Positions 4,371 to 57,645 of a stretch of 64,000 bases of DNA are shown here, piece after piece. The stretch covers positions 992,001 to 1,056,000 of the forward strand of contig OZ251239.1 in NCBI GenBank assembly GCA_965240325.2. The letters are read 5' to 3'. The translations under genes were made by a program, and so were the position numbers. This stretch comes from Rebecca billardiae RCC1528. Its lineage: Eukaryota; Protista; Haptophyta. Each line of letters opens with the position of its first letter. Position 1 is the stretch's first letter. Under the pieces are notes generated by a model that did not search any database, was not told where the DNA came from, and worked only from the letters and a program-made list of their open reading frames with translations.

Positions 4371-4549
4371 TGAACTCGTGATGAAGCCGGCGCCAGGGCC
4401 GGCGGTCAGCGATTGAGTCATATCATCACTGTGAGTAGTCACTTTCAGTGTCAGCAGCGACAGCGACGCGCCGCCGACGGCGACTCATAACGCGCGCGGC
4501 GGCGCATTAGCGGCGCTGACTAATGATATACGGCCTTGCGAATATATAT

Positions 4550-6590
4550 CACAGTGAACAAAAACGCGGGATTATCGTCACCGTAACCTGTCCGATGCGA
4601 GCCGATTTTCGGGGAATTATCGCGCGGGCCGCACGAGCGCACAGAAGACGCTACGGTGGTCGCGCAGGCGCCTGGCGAGTGCCCAGGGCACGGGACTGCA
4701 ACACCCCACCCAGCCTCCCCATCCCTCCGCCCCTCTCTGCCTCGCCGGGTTGCACGCGGCTGGCCGGTCACGTAGCTCGTGGTGAGCCATTCGTGAGCGT
4801 GGGGCCCTGCTGCTCAGTGCGGCGATGCAGCGAGGCGAAGCGGCGCGTAAGATGGCGCATCTTACTCCAAATGCAGTCTGCTGCCAGCACAGCCGCCCTC
4901 GCCGGAGTGCCTGGTCGTCACCTTCGTCGTGTGCACCTGTTGCGAGCTGCCGTCAACAAGCGAATGCCTCAGGCCTCCCGGGAGCCATTCAAACACGCTC
5001 GTCCTCGACGAGGCGTGCGCGAGGCACCGCGCGAGCGCGGGAACGGCCCTTCCCAGCATACTCCTACACGGCCATCCACCTCGCTACAGCCTGCCATATC
5101 ACACTCCTCCCCGCAACAGTGCCCGCGTGCCGCGTGCGAGGCCGGCCCAACCCCAGGCAGAACTGGTGCACAGATATTTTCGACTGCGAGGAGACGGCGG
5201 CGAGCACAGGCGTGCGGCGCCGTCCCGCGCTTCATTGGGATGTTCTAGACCAGTCGCGCGCCCGCGGCACCGCACCCGCCCTCTCCGCGTCGCGTGCCAC
5301 TCCACGCAGCGCGCGCCCTCTCGGGCGATGCGAGTCTCGCCATCGACGGCGATCTTGCGGCTGATTCGTACCCGCATGTATTCAACAAATACGACAAATC
5401 GCCGAGCTGAAGCGCACTTGGTCGCGCGATGGCAGGTCGCGCTGTGTGACGTCGCTCGCCGCAGGAAATTCGGTACGCGACGAGAGCACGGCGCACGCGC
5501 ACGGCGCGGCGTGGGAGGCGGGGCGGTGGTGTCCTCGAGCCATCCCGCCCACGCCGCGGTGCGCCAGCCGCCACCTCGCCGCGCCGTGGCCCATGCCGCG
5601 CGGCAGGTGTCGACCAGACCGACCTTGCCGCCCGACAGAGGGCCGCACCGGAAATTCTGTATTTGTTGAATACAGACTTACCCACGTGCCCGTGCTGAGG
5701 CGGGGCCGGTGGCGGCGGCGTGGCGCGGCGGCGGCGGCGCGGGCAGCCTGACGGGCCAGATAGGGCGCGCCAGGTCGGGGCGATCGTGATGGGATGGTTC
5801 TATACGCATCAGCGCGTGCTCCTGTGCATCTCAAGAGCGCGCTGGGCGCCCTCTCTCGCGCCTATGCCCATCCCACGCGGTCTGAGAAGCCTCTGTTTGG
5901 ACACCGTTGGCTGCGCGCTCGGTCGTGGCTGCCCGGCGGGTCGAAGAGGTCGAGGCGAGCCGGGTCGTTCGCGACGGACGATGTCTATGGGTCATGGTGA
6001 GTGGCAGCACGCAGCTCGGGCGCGCGCCCGGCGCCTCCTCGCCGCGCTACATCCACACCAAGATCTGGCCCAAAACCAGGCTTCAAGAGCGAAACTCAGT
6101 CTGGGAGCTGCTCAGGCCGCTGTGTGCGGTTTGGCGTACCGCAAACTTGTGGAGCGGGTGCCCACATGGGTTGAGCACAATGCGACGTTGCGTTTTTCCG
6201 CGAAACACCACTTCCTCGCCTCTCCGCGCGCGCGCCGCGCGGCTACCGTGACCTCATCTTAACAGGTCACGTGTGGCCGCCCGTGGGGCGAGGGTGGGCG
6301 AGGAGGGGCGGGCGAGGGTGACGCCGCCCCGGGGAACCGCCTTGGCAGGCCGACCGACGCCTCGCAGCCCCCCTCGCGGCACACATGCGCGCACGCCCGC
6401 CGCTCGGAGCGCGCCATCGATTCGAATGGGCGTGCGCGCGAACGACCATGCTCAAACGGCTTCGGCCCGATCTTTCTCCACTGTGGCGGCGCGAAGTGCC
6501 GCGAACGGGGCATCAAAAAAATTCCAGCGCATCCCCACTGGGCGGAAGTGCGGACAGGTTACGGTGACGGCTAAAATCGAATTGTTTACT

Positions 6591-6593
<3 letters not shown>
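4550..6593. mobile_element. Non-autonomous DNA transposon, CACAG...CTGTG ends, 2-bp TSD (AT), copy 1; EnSpm/CACTA-like
   Basis: Starts CACAGTGAACAA and ends TTGTTTACTGTG. A subterminal 19-bp box CGTCACCGTAACCTGTCCG is inverted at both ends. It is inserted in an (AT)n tract and is homologous over its whole length to 6743-8775. Confidence 0.9.

Positions 6594-6659
<66 letters not shown>
6594..6659. repeat. (AT)n microsatellite
   Basis: Read directly from the sequence. Confidence 0.98.
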
Positions 6660-6662
<3 letters not shown>

Positions 6663-6742
6663 TATGAGAGAGCCCTGCTGGCGGAGCAGAGTGACTACTG
6701 ATAATGATATCGACGCGAGTCGCGACGACGCGACTACTACTA

Positions 6743-8775
6743 CACAGTAAAGAAATCGATTTTCGGCGTTACCGTAACCCGTCCGCACTTCCGCCCAGTG
6801 GGGATGCGCTGGAATTTTTTTCATGCCCCGTTCGCGGCACTTCGCGCCGCCACAGTGGAGAAAGATCGGGCCGAAGCCGTTTGAGCATGGTCGGTTGTGA
6901 GCACGCCCATTCGAATCGATGGCGCGCTCCGAGCGGCGGGCATGCGCGCATGTGTGCCGCGAGGGGCGCTGCGAGGCGTCGGCCGGCTTGCCAAGGCGGT
7001 TCCCCGCGGCGGCATCACCCTCGCCCGCCGCTCCTCGCCCACCCTCGCCCCACGGGCGGCCACACGTGACCTGTTAAGATGAGTTCACGGGAGCCGCACG
7101 GCACGCGCGCGGAGAGGCGAGGAAGTGGTGTTTCGCGGAAAAACGCTCTATAGCATTGTGTTCAACCCATGTGGGCACCCGCTCCGCAAGTTTGTACGCC
7201 GCCAAACCGCACACAGCGGCCTGAGCAGCTCCCAGACTGAGTTTCGCTCTTGAAGCCTGTTTTTGGGCCAGATCTTGGTGTGGATGTAGCGCGGCGAGGA
7301 GGCGCCGGGCGCGCGCCCGAGCTGCGTGCTGGCACTCGCCATGACCAATAGGCATCGTCCGTCGCGAACGACCCGGCTCGCCTCGACCTCTCCGACCCGC
7401 CGGGCAGCCACGACCGAGCACGGCACGACAATGGCCAAACCGGGAGGCTTCTCAGACCGCGTGGGATGGGCATAGGCGCGAGAGAGGGCGCCCAGCGCGC
7501 TCTTGAGATGCACAGGAGCACGCACTGATGCGTATGGAACCATCCCATCACGATCGCCCCGACCTGGCGCGCCCTATCTGGCCCGTCAGGCTGCCCGCGC
7601 CGCCGCCGCCGCGCCTCGCCGCCGCCACGGGCGCCGCCGCATCGCGGGCACGTGGGTAAGTCTGTATTCAACAAATACAGAATTTCCGGTGCGGCCCTCT
7701 GTTGGGCGGCAAGGTCGATCTGGTCGACACCTGCCGCGCGGCATGGGCCACGGCGCGGCGAGGTGGCGGCTGGCGCACCGCGGCGTGGGCGGGATGGCTC
7801 GATGACACCACCGCCCCGCCTCCCACGCCGCGCCGTGCGCGTGCGCCGTGCTCTCGTCGCGTACCGAATTTCCTGCGGCGAGCGACGTCCAACAGCGCGA
7901 CCATGCCATCGCGCGACGAGGTGCGTTCAGCTCGGCGATTTGTCGTATTTGTTGAATACATGCGGGTACGAATCGGCCGCAAGATGGCCTCGACGTACAC
8001 GTCGAGAGCCACGCGCGCGGTGTGGAGTGGCACGCGACGCGGAGAGGGCGGGTGCGGTGCCGCGGGCGCGCGACTGGTCTAGAACATCCCAATGAAGCGC
8101 GGGACGGCGCTGCGCGCCTGTGCTCGCTGCCGTCTCCTCGCAGTCGAAAATATCTGTGCACCCTTCTGTCTGGCTAGTCGACCGGCCGGCACGCGGCACG
8201 CGAGCAGTGTGTGTGGGGAGGAATGTGACATGGCAGGCTGTGGCGAGGTGGATGGCCGTGCAGGTCTACGCTAGGAAGGGCCGCTCCCGCGCTCGCGTGG
8301 TGCCTCGCGCACGCCTCGTCGAGGACGAGCGTGTTTGAATGGCTCCGGAGAAGGCTTACGATCGCTCGTTGATGGGCAGCGCGCGACACGTGCACACGAC
8401 GAAGGTGACGACCAGGCACTCCGGCGAGGGCGGCTGTGCTGGTAGCAGACTGCATTCGGAGTAAGATGCGCCATCTTACGCGCCGCTTCGCCTCGCTGCA
8501 TCGCCGCACTGAGCAGCAGGGCTCCACGCTCACGAATGGCTCACCACGAGCTACGTGACCGGCCAGCCGCGTGCAACCCGGCGAGGCAGAGAGGGGCGGA
8601 GGGATGGGGAGGCTGGGTGGGATGTTGCAGTCCCATGCCCGGGGCACTCGCCAGGCGCCTGCGCGACCACCGTAGCGCCGTCTGTGCGCTCGTGCGGCCC
8701 GCGCGAGAAATTCCCCGAAAATCGGCTCGTGTCGGACGGGTTACGGTAACGATAATCCCGTTTTTGTTCACTGTG
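6743..8775. mobile_element. Non-autonomous DNA transposon, CACAG...CTGTG ends, 2-bp TSD (TA), copy 2 in opposite orientation
   Basis: ta|CACAGTAAAG...GTTCACTGTG|ta, with box CGTTACCGTAACCCGTCCG at both ends. It is a diverged inverted homologue of 4550-6593. Confidence 0.9.
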
Positions 8776-8784
8776 TAACTAACG

Positions 8785-11136: not shown

Positions 11137-12862
11137 CAGGTGGATACGGGTGATCTGGACAGTGGCCGACCCAACTCACGCGGAAGCCTCCCTGGGAGCA
11201 TTGGGGTCGAAGGGGCGCCAGGGACGGACTTCAGGGGGTCCCTGGAGTTCCGCCGCAGCGCGCTTTCTGCGCTGCGGGCCCGTCTCCGCGCGTGGCGGCC
11301 GCAATGGCACTGTCCAATTAGCCCTGGCACTGGCTGAGGCATGGGAATCGAGCTCAGAGACGCGCGCGCGGAGGAAAAGCGTGTGCAGCGGCTCGGACGG
11401 TTGCTCTGGGACCTACCCACGCCAGCGCAACCGCGCCTTGCCTCGGAGTCCGACCTTCCTGAGTCCGCGCACGCGCCTTGCGGCTTGAAACGCTGGCGTT
11501 CGCCCTTGTGCGCGGGACTCACGAAACAAGGCGAAGGCGGCGAGAAGCGCGACCTGGCGCGTGCGCAGACGACGTCTCACGACCAGGTGAGTTCAGCGAA
11601 CATCGTGCACCGTCGTGGCGACCCGCCAGTGGGCGCTCGTGCTCGTTCGCCCACGAGCCCTCGCCACGATGCCCGCCGCCCGCTGAGTGTCCATAGCCCC
11701 TGTGTCCAGTTAGCCCAAGGGCGGTAAGGGCTGTCAACTCCCAGTGGCGGCAGCGCCAGAGGTTGGCTCCCGCTTCGCTGCTGCGCGGCCTCGCTCCAGC
11801 GACTAACTCTCGTGGGCGCCCGCCCCGGGGGGCGAGTGGGGCGCGCACGGCGCGAGCTCCTGCGGCCGTGTACGCGCGCGCGGAGGCGGCGCGCGCGGCT
11901 GGGCAGGTGCTAGGGAGTGCATGTCGCCCTCCCACGCCGCGCGCCTTGCTCGCCGCCGCTTTCGCCGCGCCTCAGGCCAGCGCGCACGCGTGCGCCGCCT
12001 CCAGAGCCAGCCTCGGGCCCGCGGCAGCTGGCCGCGCGCGTGTGGTGCGCGGTCTGGTCGGCGCGAGTCGGTCGGGGCCATCGGGCGAGGTTCGCATACT
12101 TTAGACGCGCGCTCTGCCGCTGCGCGCCGCCGCGCATGGGCCCGGTACCATCCCGTGAAGCTGTTGAAGGAAGCTGATCGATGAATGCACGACAAGCAGA
12201 AATGAGCTCGAACACGCGACAGTGAGCGCCCATGCGCGTGATAGGCGGCCGCATTGGGTGCGTGTACGGCGTCCAATGGGTGCATTGCCCCGCTCTCCAT
12301 CGCCTGCGCTCGTCTGTTGTGCTCTTCAGCGTCTCCATGAGCGTCCAAACATGAGCATTTTCGCATTCGTGCTGCAGTTCGTGTCAGACCTAAGATGCTT
12401 GCGTGTCGACCCATGACAACCGTGCGCGGCGGCGCGCGGCGGCAGAGCGCGCGTCTAAAGTATGCGAACCTCGCCCGATGGCCCCGACCGACTCGCGCCG
12501 ACCAGACCGCGCACCACACGCGCGCGGCCAGCTGCCGCGGGCCCGAGGCTGGCTCTGGAGGCGGCGCACGCGTGCGCGCTGGCCTGAGGCGCGGCGAAAG
12601 CGGCGGCGAGCAAGGCGCGCGGCGTGGGAGGGCGACATGCACTCCCTAGCACCTGCCCAGCCGCGCGCGCCGCCTCCGCGCGCGCGTACACGGCCGCAGG
12701 AGCTCGCGCCGTGCGCGCCCCACTCGCCCCCCGGGGCGGGCGCCCACGAGAGTTAGTCGCTGGAGCGAGGCCGCGCAGCAGCGAAGCGGGAGCCAACCTC
12801 TGGCGCTGCCGCCACTGGGAGTTGACAGCCCTTACCGCCCTTGGTTAGCCCGTATCCACCTG
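11137..12862. mobile_element. TA-flanked non-autonomous TIR element (Tc1/mariner-like) with its right TIR interrupted by a foldback
   Basis: ta|CAGGTGGATACGGG...CCCGTATCCACCTG|ta. The TIR extends (ctggaca/tgtccag) once 11716-12850 is removed. Confidence 0.85.
11716..12843. mobile_element. Foldback element with ~420-bp TIRs, CAAGG termini and 7-bp TSD GTTAGCC (P/Galileo-like)
   Basis: Near-perfect arms at 11716-~12136 and ~12423-12843. GTTAGCC occurs at 11709-11715 and 12844-12850. Confidence 0.88.
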
Positions 12863-56639: not shown

Positions 56640-57645
56640 TGACTTGCTGTTGGCGGCGCGCGCCGCGCTCGCGAGGTGGCTCGGGCCCATGCGTGCCTTC
56701 GAGCGCCCGGCGACCGCGCGCGCATCGGCTTCCTCCGCCTGCGAGTCGCCCGCGGCCGCGACCGCCGCCCGCTTCGAGTGGGTTGACTGCGCCCGAGCCT
56801 GCTCGCCGCCGAGCGCAGGGATGAGTCGAGCGCGGCGCGAGGCGGCGATCGTGATCGGGCGATCGTGTGCGCCCATATGCGCCCCATCTGCCACGGCGCG
56901 ACCGCTTCAGCGTGCGTATGTCACCCCACTTGTCAGGGATGTCGGGTAGCAGGCGAGCACCGTCGGCCAGTGTGTCCGCCCGCGCCGCGTGCGCACAGGG
57001 CCATACGACGCGGAAACACGTCACAACCGGCATCAGTGCATGGCCATGACCGTGTACAGCCCCGCGTGGGCCACCAAGGTCATGCCATCCACTGCTCTGC
57101 CAGCTCGCAACGTGCGTCAATGCTGACGACAACTCTGGTCGAGAAGAAGTTGCTTCTTGAGTTCTGTCACAGTGGTGCACACAGCATCAGTGGACGTCCC
57201 CATGACTACGGATGCGGACCAACCGTGCCCGCCAGCTTGCGTAGCGAAGACATCACGAGACGCCACGGAGCGACATCCGACGCGTAGAGCCCTTCGCGCA
57301 CGCGGCGCGGGCGGACACGCTGGCCGACAGAGCTCGCCCACTCCCCGACATGCCTGACAAGTGGGGTCACATACGCACGCTGAAGCTGTCGCGCCGTGGC
57401 AAATAGGGCGCAGATGGGCGCATGCGATCGCCCGATCGTGATCGCCGCCTCGCGCCGCGCTCAACTCATCCCTGCGCTCGGCCGCGAGCAGACTCGGGCG
57501 CAGTCAACCCACTCGAAGCGGGCGGCCGCCGCGGGCGCGGGCGACTTGCAGGCGGAGGAAGCCGATGCGCGCGCGGTCGCCGGGCGCTCAAAGGCGCGCA
57601 TGGGTCCGAGCCATCCCGCCCGCGCGGCGCGCGCCGCCCAAGTCA
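56640..57645. repeat. Diverged inverted repeat (~360-bp arms, ~270-bp spacer), probably an old foldback
   Basis: 56640-~57010 is the reverse complement of ~57282-57645 with scattered substitutions. No TSD seen. Confidence 0.8.

Follow-up and report, generated by a model that had tools for sequence, protein, structure and literature searches.

What moved two 2-kb elements into one AT-rich island on a contig of a very GC-rich haptophyte-type alga, and which parts of their ends would be read by the enzyme that moved them? The elements occupy positions 4550-8775 of a 64,000-nucleotide (nt) stretch of Rebecca billardiae RCC1528 contig OZ251239.1 (G000:C22:992001-1056000), referred to here as the window, and a search of the whole assembly (72 Mb in 41 contigs) identified them as members of a real transposon family, as the initial annotation had proposed, with two subfamilies (sf1 and sf2), ends composed of a heptamer, a spacer and an inner box, 151 such ends, about 75 copies, and a 2-bp target-site duplication. 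We give a probability of roughly 0.7 to the explanation that the 2-kb copies are passengers moved by a longer element found elsewhere in the genome, the C13 element, within a cut-and-paste lineage of haptophyte-type algae, and that sf1 arose once. Assignment of the 2-kb family to the C13 element is based on shared termini, on a target duplication of equal length, and on the presence in the C13 element of an uninterrupted transposase open reading frame (ORF) that spans the full length of its relatives; judged from these sequence comparisons, the 2-kb family is probably mobilised by it in trans.

The two insertions and their family

Ends were named by their heptamers, such that the A-end begins with CACAGTG and the B-end with CACAGTA. 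The features of the two copies, with strand in parentheses where one applies, are listed below.

4550..6593 (+): copy 1, subfamily sf1; 2,044 bp, non-coding, non-autonomous; A-end at 4550, B-end at 6593
4550..4556 (+): terminal heptamer CACAGTG of the copy 1 A-end, followed by the conserved word AACAAAAAC
4576..4594 (+): 19-bp box of the copy 1 A-end, haplotype C4/T14 (sf1)
6551..6569 (-): 19-bp box of the copy 1 B-end, haplotype C4/T14 (sf1)
6587..6593 (-): terminal heptamer CACAGTA of the copy 1 B-end
4548..4549 (left) and 6594-6595 (right): target-site duplication AT of copy 1; the right copy is within an (AT)n run
6594..6660: (AT)n microsatellite, insertion target of copy 1, belonging to the AT-rich island in which the two copies lie
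6743..8775 (-): copy 2, subfamily sf2; 2,033 bp, inverted relative to copy 1; B-end at 6743, A-end at 8775
6743..6749 (+): terminal heptamer CACAGTA of the copy 2 B-end
6767..6785 (+): 19-bp box of the copy 2 B-end, haplotype T4/C14 (sf2), the same as the B-end box of the C13 element
8733..8751 (-): 19-bp box of the copy 2 A-end, haplotype T4/C14 (sf2)
8769..8775 (-): terminal heptamer CACAGTG of the copy 2 A-end
6741..6742 (left) and 8776-8777 (right): target-site duplication TA of copy 2; the longest direct repeat is exactly 2 bp

The two copies are 92.7% identical across their full length and lie in inverted orientation with 149 bp between them; copy 1 shares 94-99% identity with other sf1 copies. 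The box, which is made up of two tandem CGTWAC-like hexamers and CCGTCCG, reads CGTCACCGTAACCTGTCCG in copy 1 and CGTTACCGTAACCCGTCCG in copy 2, in each case at either end, exactly as first reported, and a degenerate pattern of it occurs four times in the window, compared with 0.05 occurrences expected. Heptamer and box are separated by 19 and 17 nt in copy 1, and by 17 and 17 nt in copy 2. The initial annotation described all four ends as CACAGTR, a variable 17-19-nt spacer and a 19-bp box, and all four were found at the places given, but the spacer is variable only between A- and B-ends and between subfamilies; within one end type, it is conserved from copy to copy. The arrangement CACAGTG-A-ACAAAAACG (heptamer, 1 nt, nonamer-like word), also noted at the outset, is present at 4550 and, reverse-complemented, at 8775. 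The nonamer-like word is an 8/9 match to the nonamer, and is found at the A-end only, being absent at the B-end.

A single composite element covering 4550-8775 was rejected because its outer flanks, AT and TA, form no duplication, and these non-matching flanks indicate two separate insertions. Taken alone, the copy 1 duplication is ambiguous, given its (AT)n surroundings. At the scale of the genome, however, a 2-bp direct repeat flanks 29 of 30 sampled copies, in agreement with the length originally assigned; the repeat is exactly 2 bp in 21 copies, and all longer repeats sit in TA microsatellites, where length is ambiguous. The duplicated dinucleotide is variable (TA in 9 copies, AT in 5, and the rest spread over nine other dinucleotides), and the flanks, measured over 10 bp on each side, are 70% AT, whereas the window is 30% AT. 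The duplication thus measures 2 bp and lacks sequence specificity, and insertion shows a strong preference for rare AT-rich islands, which is why two copies are found side by side here.

When copy 1 was used to search the genome, the best 40 of 144 candidates were scored, and most of these were full-length. The exact heptamer and box pattern marked the 151 ends, with no occurrences of a reversed-pattern control, and it is from this number that a family size of about 75 elements is derived. Element lengths are uniform (2,033-2,072 bp). The 2-kb interior contains no ORF conserved between copies and has no Pfam match and no Rfam match, so that a coding or RNA function for the interior was rejected and the family was judged to be non-coding and non-autonomous. 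Some sf2 copies are 0.0% diverged from one another, indicating recent activity, and nearest neighbours within sf1 are about 0.6% apart. Judged by these distances, both subfamilies have amplified, sf2 most recently.

Longer "copies" were considered as autonomous elements, and proved to be 2-kb elements with nested insertions. Among them, the 6.3-kb L031 is an sf1 copy that holds a nested 4.2-kb element with an 8-bp duplication, and L032-L034 are likewise 2-kb elements carrying insertions. The element nested in L031 (L031:2120-6331; G000:C17:222416-226627) has 606-bp terminal inverted repeats (TIRs) and at least eight genome copies, and its ORFs gave no Pfam match. Several copies of the 2-kb family have insertions of 2-4 nt within the first 7-24 nt of otherwise intact ends, for example directly after the heptamer (L026; G000:C8:3046743, C13:2556288, C8:3180681, C1:3824343, C7:1441548), and these may reflect imprecise repair or end processing.

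The inner box and the origin of sf1

Only two box haplotypes were detected genome-wide, C4/T14 in sf1 (about 16 copies) and T4/C14 in sf2 (about 60 copies). There are 28 exact occurrences of the sf1 box in the genome, and zero occurrences in the whole genome of the recombinant, or one-change, haplotypes C4/C14 and T4/T14. Boxes were aligned in 31 rows representing 30 distinct copies, with copy 1 of the window entered twice (win_4550 and L001), and both ends of a copy agreed exactly in 27 of the 31 rows. The remaining four rows (L003, L009, L016, L025) contain a private mutation or insertion in one box of a copy that is otherwise intact. Among the end pairs listed genome-wide, 33 of 33 were concordant. 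The genome-wide tabulation of exact ends, box haplotypes and 2-bp duplications, which the initial annotation had called for, thus extended to other copies the agreement between ends that had been noticed in the window.

Three outgroup ends, namely both ends of the C13 element and an end from a related fragment family (L043), carry T4 and C14, indicating that the sf1 state, C4/T14, is derived. When the 30 copies were grouped, sf1 formed one clade, which includes an early-branching subgroup (L008-L011), and sf2 formed several groups. Since sf1 is one clade, the concerted change was a single evolutionary event and not repeated co-variation. What stands of the proposal that the inner box co-varies between ends is that the change was concerted at both of them; what does not stand is the implied recurrence.

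Comparison of all sf1 with all sf2 copies over 2,044 bp revealed about 17 isolated near-fixed substitutions and three clustered replacements. Seven of the 17 isolated substitutions on the sf1 stem are located in the terminal 2x43 nt, representing a 16-fold enrichment (Fisher p = 2.5e-6), and four of the 17 fall within the two boxes, which share both the affected positions and the bases substituted there (p = 2e-4). According to the rate that is assumed, both changes would recur at the second end with a probability of about 3e-5 to 3e-3. Box positions 4 and 14 are 10 bp, or one helical turn, apart, and both changes are transitions. The change of C14 to T is a CpG transition that destroys the CpG, whereas T4 to C is not a CpG change. 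We infer that selection on end recognition is the most likely cause of the concerted change in sf1.

The C13 element, its transposase and its relatives

The candidate partner is located as follows.

G000:C13:2816986-2822947 (L038:501-6462): C13 element, autonomous candidate, 5,962 bp

The bait for the partner search was the C-terminal part of a 1,581-codon ORF in L037, a 6.3-kb element with CACAGCA ends that lies 523 kb downstream on the same contig as the window and is present in 10 identical copies. The search recovered these 10 copies and two distant paralogues, one of which, at C13:2821832-2822413, lies just downstream of an unpaired B-end from the end-pattern search. The C13 element at this locus is the sole full copy in the genome, and is flanked by the 2-bp duplication TC/TC. 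Its B-end agrees with that of sf2 in 42 of 43 positions and has an identical box, and the first 16 nt of its A-end are those of the passengers' A-end, nonamer-like word included. The A-end box, CGTTACAGCAAACCGTCCG, matches the passengers' box at 16 of 19 positions. Similarity between the C13 element and the 2-kb family is confined to the terminus of the A-end, about 60 nt of the B-end and a single patch of 53 nt. Derivation of the 2-kb family from the C13 element by internal deletion was rejected because the interiors are unrelated, which indicates that the passengers borrowed their ends. A genome-wide protein search revealed no close paralogue of the C13 transposase; the next (on C14) is 29% identical, and it was rejected as a partner because no recognisable inverted ends are present within 10 kb.

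The C13 element is 2.6 kb from an sf2 passenger copy (both are contained in G000:C13:2812320-2822947), and it directly abuts degenerate TTAGGG-type repeats (L038:6463-6520) about 3.7 kb from the contig end, a subtelomeric setting. A fragment of a C13-like element, including a B-type end with the box variant CGTTACGGTAACCCGTCCG, is embedded in a repeat of at least 2.4 kb that is present in three 99%-identical copies (L041, L042 and L043, at G000:C5:3399761, C7:1439730 and C1:1477927, respectively).

Gene models were limited to continuous ORFs. The transposase ORF of the C13 element (L038:1198-6051) is of low complexity in its first third, and the first ~560 codons are probably not all coding. 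For the last ~810 residues, a search of 1.84 billion representative proteins gave only 24 relatives, originating from Pavlovales sp. CCMP2436, MMETSP transcripts and marine metagenomes. The transposase and these relatives contain no Pfam transposase domain, and classification at the sequence level was abandoned, because Pfam and PDB sequence searches were all negative. In contrast, when an AlphaFold2 model (predicted local distance difference test score, pLDDT, 71; predicted template modelling score, pTM, 0.68) was compared to the PDB with Foldseek, the top 37 matches were all RAG1 or RAG-like (RAGL) chains. Alignment to RAG1 with VIA-align gave Z scores of 12-12.8, with a root-mean-square deviation of about 4.1 Å over about 373 residues, and placed model residues 78-699 on mouse RAG1 residues 473-963. 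Z scores were 11.8 for BbRAGL, 9.1 and 8.0 for HzTransib, and about 6 for the best unrelated fold (helical proteins). The family alignment conserves LKFDxA (D191), ADDAA (D314/D315), C376xxC379, H436xxEN, and GQE699, the last of which is aligned to RAG1 E962. C376xxC379, situated between D314/D315 and E699, is kept in 8-9 of 9 aligned relatives, and the conserved H436 is followed by xxEN, with a second His 12 residues on in several members. The protein is thus predicted to be a DDE transposase with a RAG1/Transib-like fold. The initial annotation had proposed a search for long copies and classification of their ORFs; the long copies were 2-kb elements with insertions, the candidate partner came from the protein search with L037, and classification of its transposase yielded a predicted fold, but not a class at the sequence level.

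A second gene, ORF1 (L038:806-1798), lies upstream of the transposase. It is 44% identical (E = 3e-51) to a gene that is also upstream of the transposase in the metagenomic relative L044, and 38% identical to the N-terminal part of a transcript from the Pavlovales cluster. This conservation, beside or fused with the transposase, argues for a lineage of two-gene elements. ORF1 has no Pfam family, no Foldseek match below E = 0.02, and a best Z score of 5.3 in a wide VIA-align search. On these comparisons, ORF1 is an orphan accessory protein of the transposon lineage.

The arrangement of the ends extends to sister families. In L037, likewise an autonomous family, the heptamer is CACAG, the flanks are TA, and a CCGTTA-type word lies about 18 nt in from either end; the L037 transposase is homologous to that of the C13 element over the C-terminal region (BLASTP 5e-9, 22% identity); no ORF1 homologue was detectable in L037. 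L037 itself was rejected as the mobiliser of the 2-kb family, because its ends, box and spacer differ and it shares no interior or protein similarity with the family. L040 (L040:1377-7225; G000:C20) is an autonomous family of 5.8 kb with a 1,280-codon ORF; its termini read CACAGCG, its duplication is CT/CT, and the word CCGTAA or CGTTAC lies 20-21 nt in from either end. The C-terminal region of its transposase is 34% identical to that of L037 and 25% identical to that of the C13 element (L038), such that the three transposases are 22-34% identical over these regions. The metagenomic relative L044 carries CACAGTGACAGT at both ends. The common layout in L037, L040 and L044 indicates that the lineage is characterised by ends with a heptamer, a spacer and a box built on a CGTWAC-type core. 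In addition, about 38 genome loci (e.g., C3:4456143-4456553) contain an open frame of about 470 codons with 80% identity to the L037 transposase over its last 138 residues, and probably represent a passenger family with a captured transposase tail domain.

Three other large inverted-repeat pairs are present in the window and are probably other foldback or TIR transposons: 11715-12139 and 12420-12844 (arms of 425 nt, 100% complementary), 46574-47120 and 49213-49759 (547 nt, 99%), and 56652-57014 and 57276-57638 (363 nt, 90%).

Competing explanations and comparison with known systems

The mechanism we favour can be stated as follows. Copies 1 and 2 would be independent insertions into one AT-rich island by non-autonomous passengers of a cut-and-paste DNA transposon lineage of haptophyte-type algae. 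The only functional parts of the passengers would be their termini, consisting of the CACAGTR cleavage heptamer, the 17-19-nt spacer and the 19-bp box, and the C13 element would mobilise them in trans. If the transposase acts as RAG1 and Transib do (PMC1131882), its catalytic core would engage the heptamer, while a second DNA-binding part, either the transposase N-terminus or ORF1, may read the box about three helical turns inside, and strand transfer staggered by 2 bp would produce the 2-bp duplication. The sf1 subfamily would have originated once from an sf2-like ancestor, when the two box transitions were fixed at both ends, followed by amplification to about 16 copies.

A number of observations weigh against this explanation. 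The proposed partner is single-copy, its interior is unrelated to that of the passengers, so that the link rests on about 45 nt per end, and its own two boxes differ at 3 of 19 positions; in addition, the assembly contains no transposase with sf1-type ends. The assignment of the fold is based on an AlphaFold2 model built on 22 sequences only, PDB sequence searches with either the single sequence or a profile returned no RAG1 or Transib chain, and the family alignment shows no evident H(3-4)H motif of the kind that is canonical for the CMC group. Finally, the concerted box change is, on the grouping of the copies, one event on the sf1 stem, and it includes C14 to T at a CpG that may be hypermutable. 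Because there is no sf1-type transposase and the ends of the partner differ at three box positions, neither strict matching of ends nor co-evolution with the transposase is supported, identical boxes seem not to be required, and the earlier suggestion that the boxes co-evolve with the transposase finds only one matching transposase gene, whose ends are sf2-like.

If the C13 element is merely a cousin with ancestral termini, the 2-kb family could have been moved by another transposase that is missing from the assembly or extinct, such as an sf1-specific paralogue. The 16/19 match of the C13 A-end box, the location of this single-copy element near a contig end, and the lack of an autonomous element with the sf1 box are consistent with that idea. 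However, the B-end match of 42/43, the 16/16 match of the A-end terminal word and the shared duplication length all tie the passengers to the C13 element, the identical sf2 copies imply a source that is currently active, and no closer paralogue exists genome-wide, the next being only 29% identical and lacking recognisable inverted ends; we therefore regard a missing transposase as unlikely. A non-adaptive origin of the two-base change in sf1 is possible, although on balance doubtful. The change could have been copied between ends by short-tract conversion or template switching, or have arisen by chance aided by CpG hypermutability, and then spread by chance amplification, which would be in keeping with one event in one clade, with the loss of a CpG at C14, and with the tolerance of box variation seen in the C13 ends (three differences) and in the private mutations of L003, L009, L016 and L025. 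Yet conversion would have had a very short tract to act on, since the two ends share only the 19-bp box and the heptamer; T4 to C does not involve a CpG, the odds against an independent repeat at the other end and the enrichment of terminal substitutions are as given above, and no one-change intermediate is present in the genome.

Homology to true V(D)J signals (heptamer plus nonamer), with the family being strictly of the Transib/RAG type, is very improbable. The exact CACAGTG and the 8/9 nonamer-like word at the A-end, the conservation of that word in the C13 element, and the RAG1-like predicted fold speak for this view, but the word is 1 nt from the heptamer, rather than 12 or 23, and is missing from the B-end, no 12/23-type asymmetry exists, the duplication is 2 bp rather than 5, the targets are AT-rich rather than GC-rich (PMC1131882), there is no sequence similarity to Transib or RAG1, and the structural alignment starts at about RAG1 residue 470 and falls short of the nonamer-binding region at 387-480 (PMC1131882). 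A more ambitious proposal, which we consider tentative and rather unlikely in its complete form, is that haptophyte-type algae hold a distinct, sequence-orphan, two-gene lineage with a RAG1 fold, 2-bp duplications at AT-rich targets, and recombination-signal-like ends in which a cleavage heptamer and a separately read CGTWAC-type box are held at a fixed distance, and that sf1 represents an adaptive and simultaneous re-tuning of the box at both ends. Such re-tuning, at two positions one helical turn apart and with the removal of a CpG at one of them, could have provided escape from methylation-based silencing or an advantage in competition for transposase, and if the proposal is true, the natural sf1/sf2 pair would be a ready system in which to study the pairing and reading of two-part signals by RAG-like enzymes.

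CA..TG termini and 2-5-bp duplications define the CMCT clade, which contains CACTA/EnSpm, Mirage, Chapaev and Transib, as well as Plavaka, ESTA and Lanisha (PMC12730594). The CACAGTR..YACTGTG termini at 151 ends fit CA..TG, and the 2-bp duplication is within the range of the clade; C376xxC379, between D314/D315 and E699, agrees with the clade as well. The core is RAG1-like, as predicted here, and both the link to RAG1 by structure comparison and the 2-bp duplications recall the fungal ESTA lineage, whose RAG1 link was made by profile or structure comparison only and whose duplications are TA (PMC12730594); unlike in ESTA, the duplication here is variable and not fixed as TA. The family also differs from the clade in that sequence comparison detects no resemblance of its transposase to Pfam transposase families or RAG1/Transib chains, apparently in that HxxEN is conserved and H(3-4)H is not evident, in the presence of a conserved ORF1 upstream of the transposase, and in its hosts, which are haptophyte-type algae and unidentified marine eukaryotes.

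Transib TIRs with a heptamer, spacer and nonamer were described in 2005 (PMC1131882) and the CMCT clade is recognised (PMC12730594), so the suggestion that the present architecture might be undescribed was not upheld. Like Transib and RAG signals, the ends described here are bipartite, with a CAC-initiated heptamer, a spacer of fixed length and free sequence, and an inner conserved motif, and the predicted catalytic fold is shared (Z 12.8 to RAG1, 9.1 to HzTransib). The differences are a duplication of 2 bp rather than 5 bp, AT-rich rather than GC-rich targets (compared with Transib; PMC1131882), spacers of 17-19 nt at both ends with no 12/23 asymmetry, and an inner motif that is a GC-rich CGTWAC-type box and not an A-rich nonamer. 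The nonamer-binding region of RAG1, residues 387-480 (PMC1131882), is essentially uncovered by our alignment, and no RAG2-like gene was seen. The nonamer-like word singled out by the initial annotation is conserved at the A-end in the family and in the C13 element, but its 1-nt spacing is not like that of a recombination signal sequence (RSS) and it does not occur at the B-end; the box sits at the position of the nonamer without similarity to it. The word is not a counterpart of the RSS nonamer. Strict membership in Transib fails on duplication length, target composition, inner motif and sequence similarity.

In maize En/Spm (CACTA), TnpA binds subterminal motifs and TnpD is the transposase; the 12-bp subterminal motifs occur in arrays, and the duplication is 3 bp. 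The likeness to the family described here lies in CAC termini, a two-gene element, and a short subterminal motif that is apart from the cleavage site and could be read by a second protein. The family differs in having one box per end rather than arrays, CACAG rather than CACTA termini, a 2-bp rather than a 3-bp duplication, and an ORF1 without similarity to anything known. By its termini, its duplication length and its lack of repeat arrays, the family falls outside EnSpm/CACTA as strictly defined. The original view that a 2-bp duplication fits EnSpm-type elements better is nevertheless sound, in that this length excludes strict Transib/ProtoRAG and fits the CMC (EnSpm/Mirage) side.

On balance, the family is best placed in the CMCT group, as a haptophyte lineage that is an orphan at the sequence level. 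The picture of the origin of V(D)J recombination is unchanged, the architecture being already known from Transib. What is new is a passenger family tied to a single-copy partner with a predicted RAG1-fold transposase, a conserved ORF1, and a quantified single-event change of the box. The contrast between sf1 and sf2, consisting of two linked base changes that are one helical turn apart and present at both ends, offers a simple experiment on how two-part ends are read. RAG1-fold transposases outside animals are few and poorly sampled, and to these is added, from a haptophyte-type alga, a probable active pair of one single-copy autonomous element and about 75 passengers, in which a predicted RAG1-like core combined with 2-bp duplications and AT-rich targets would widen the known range of the CACTA-to-Transib group.

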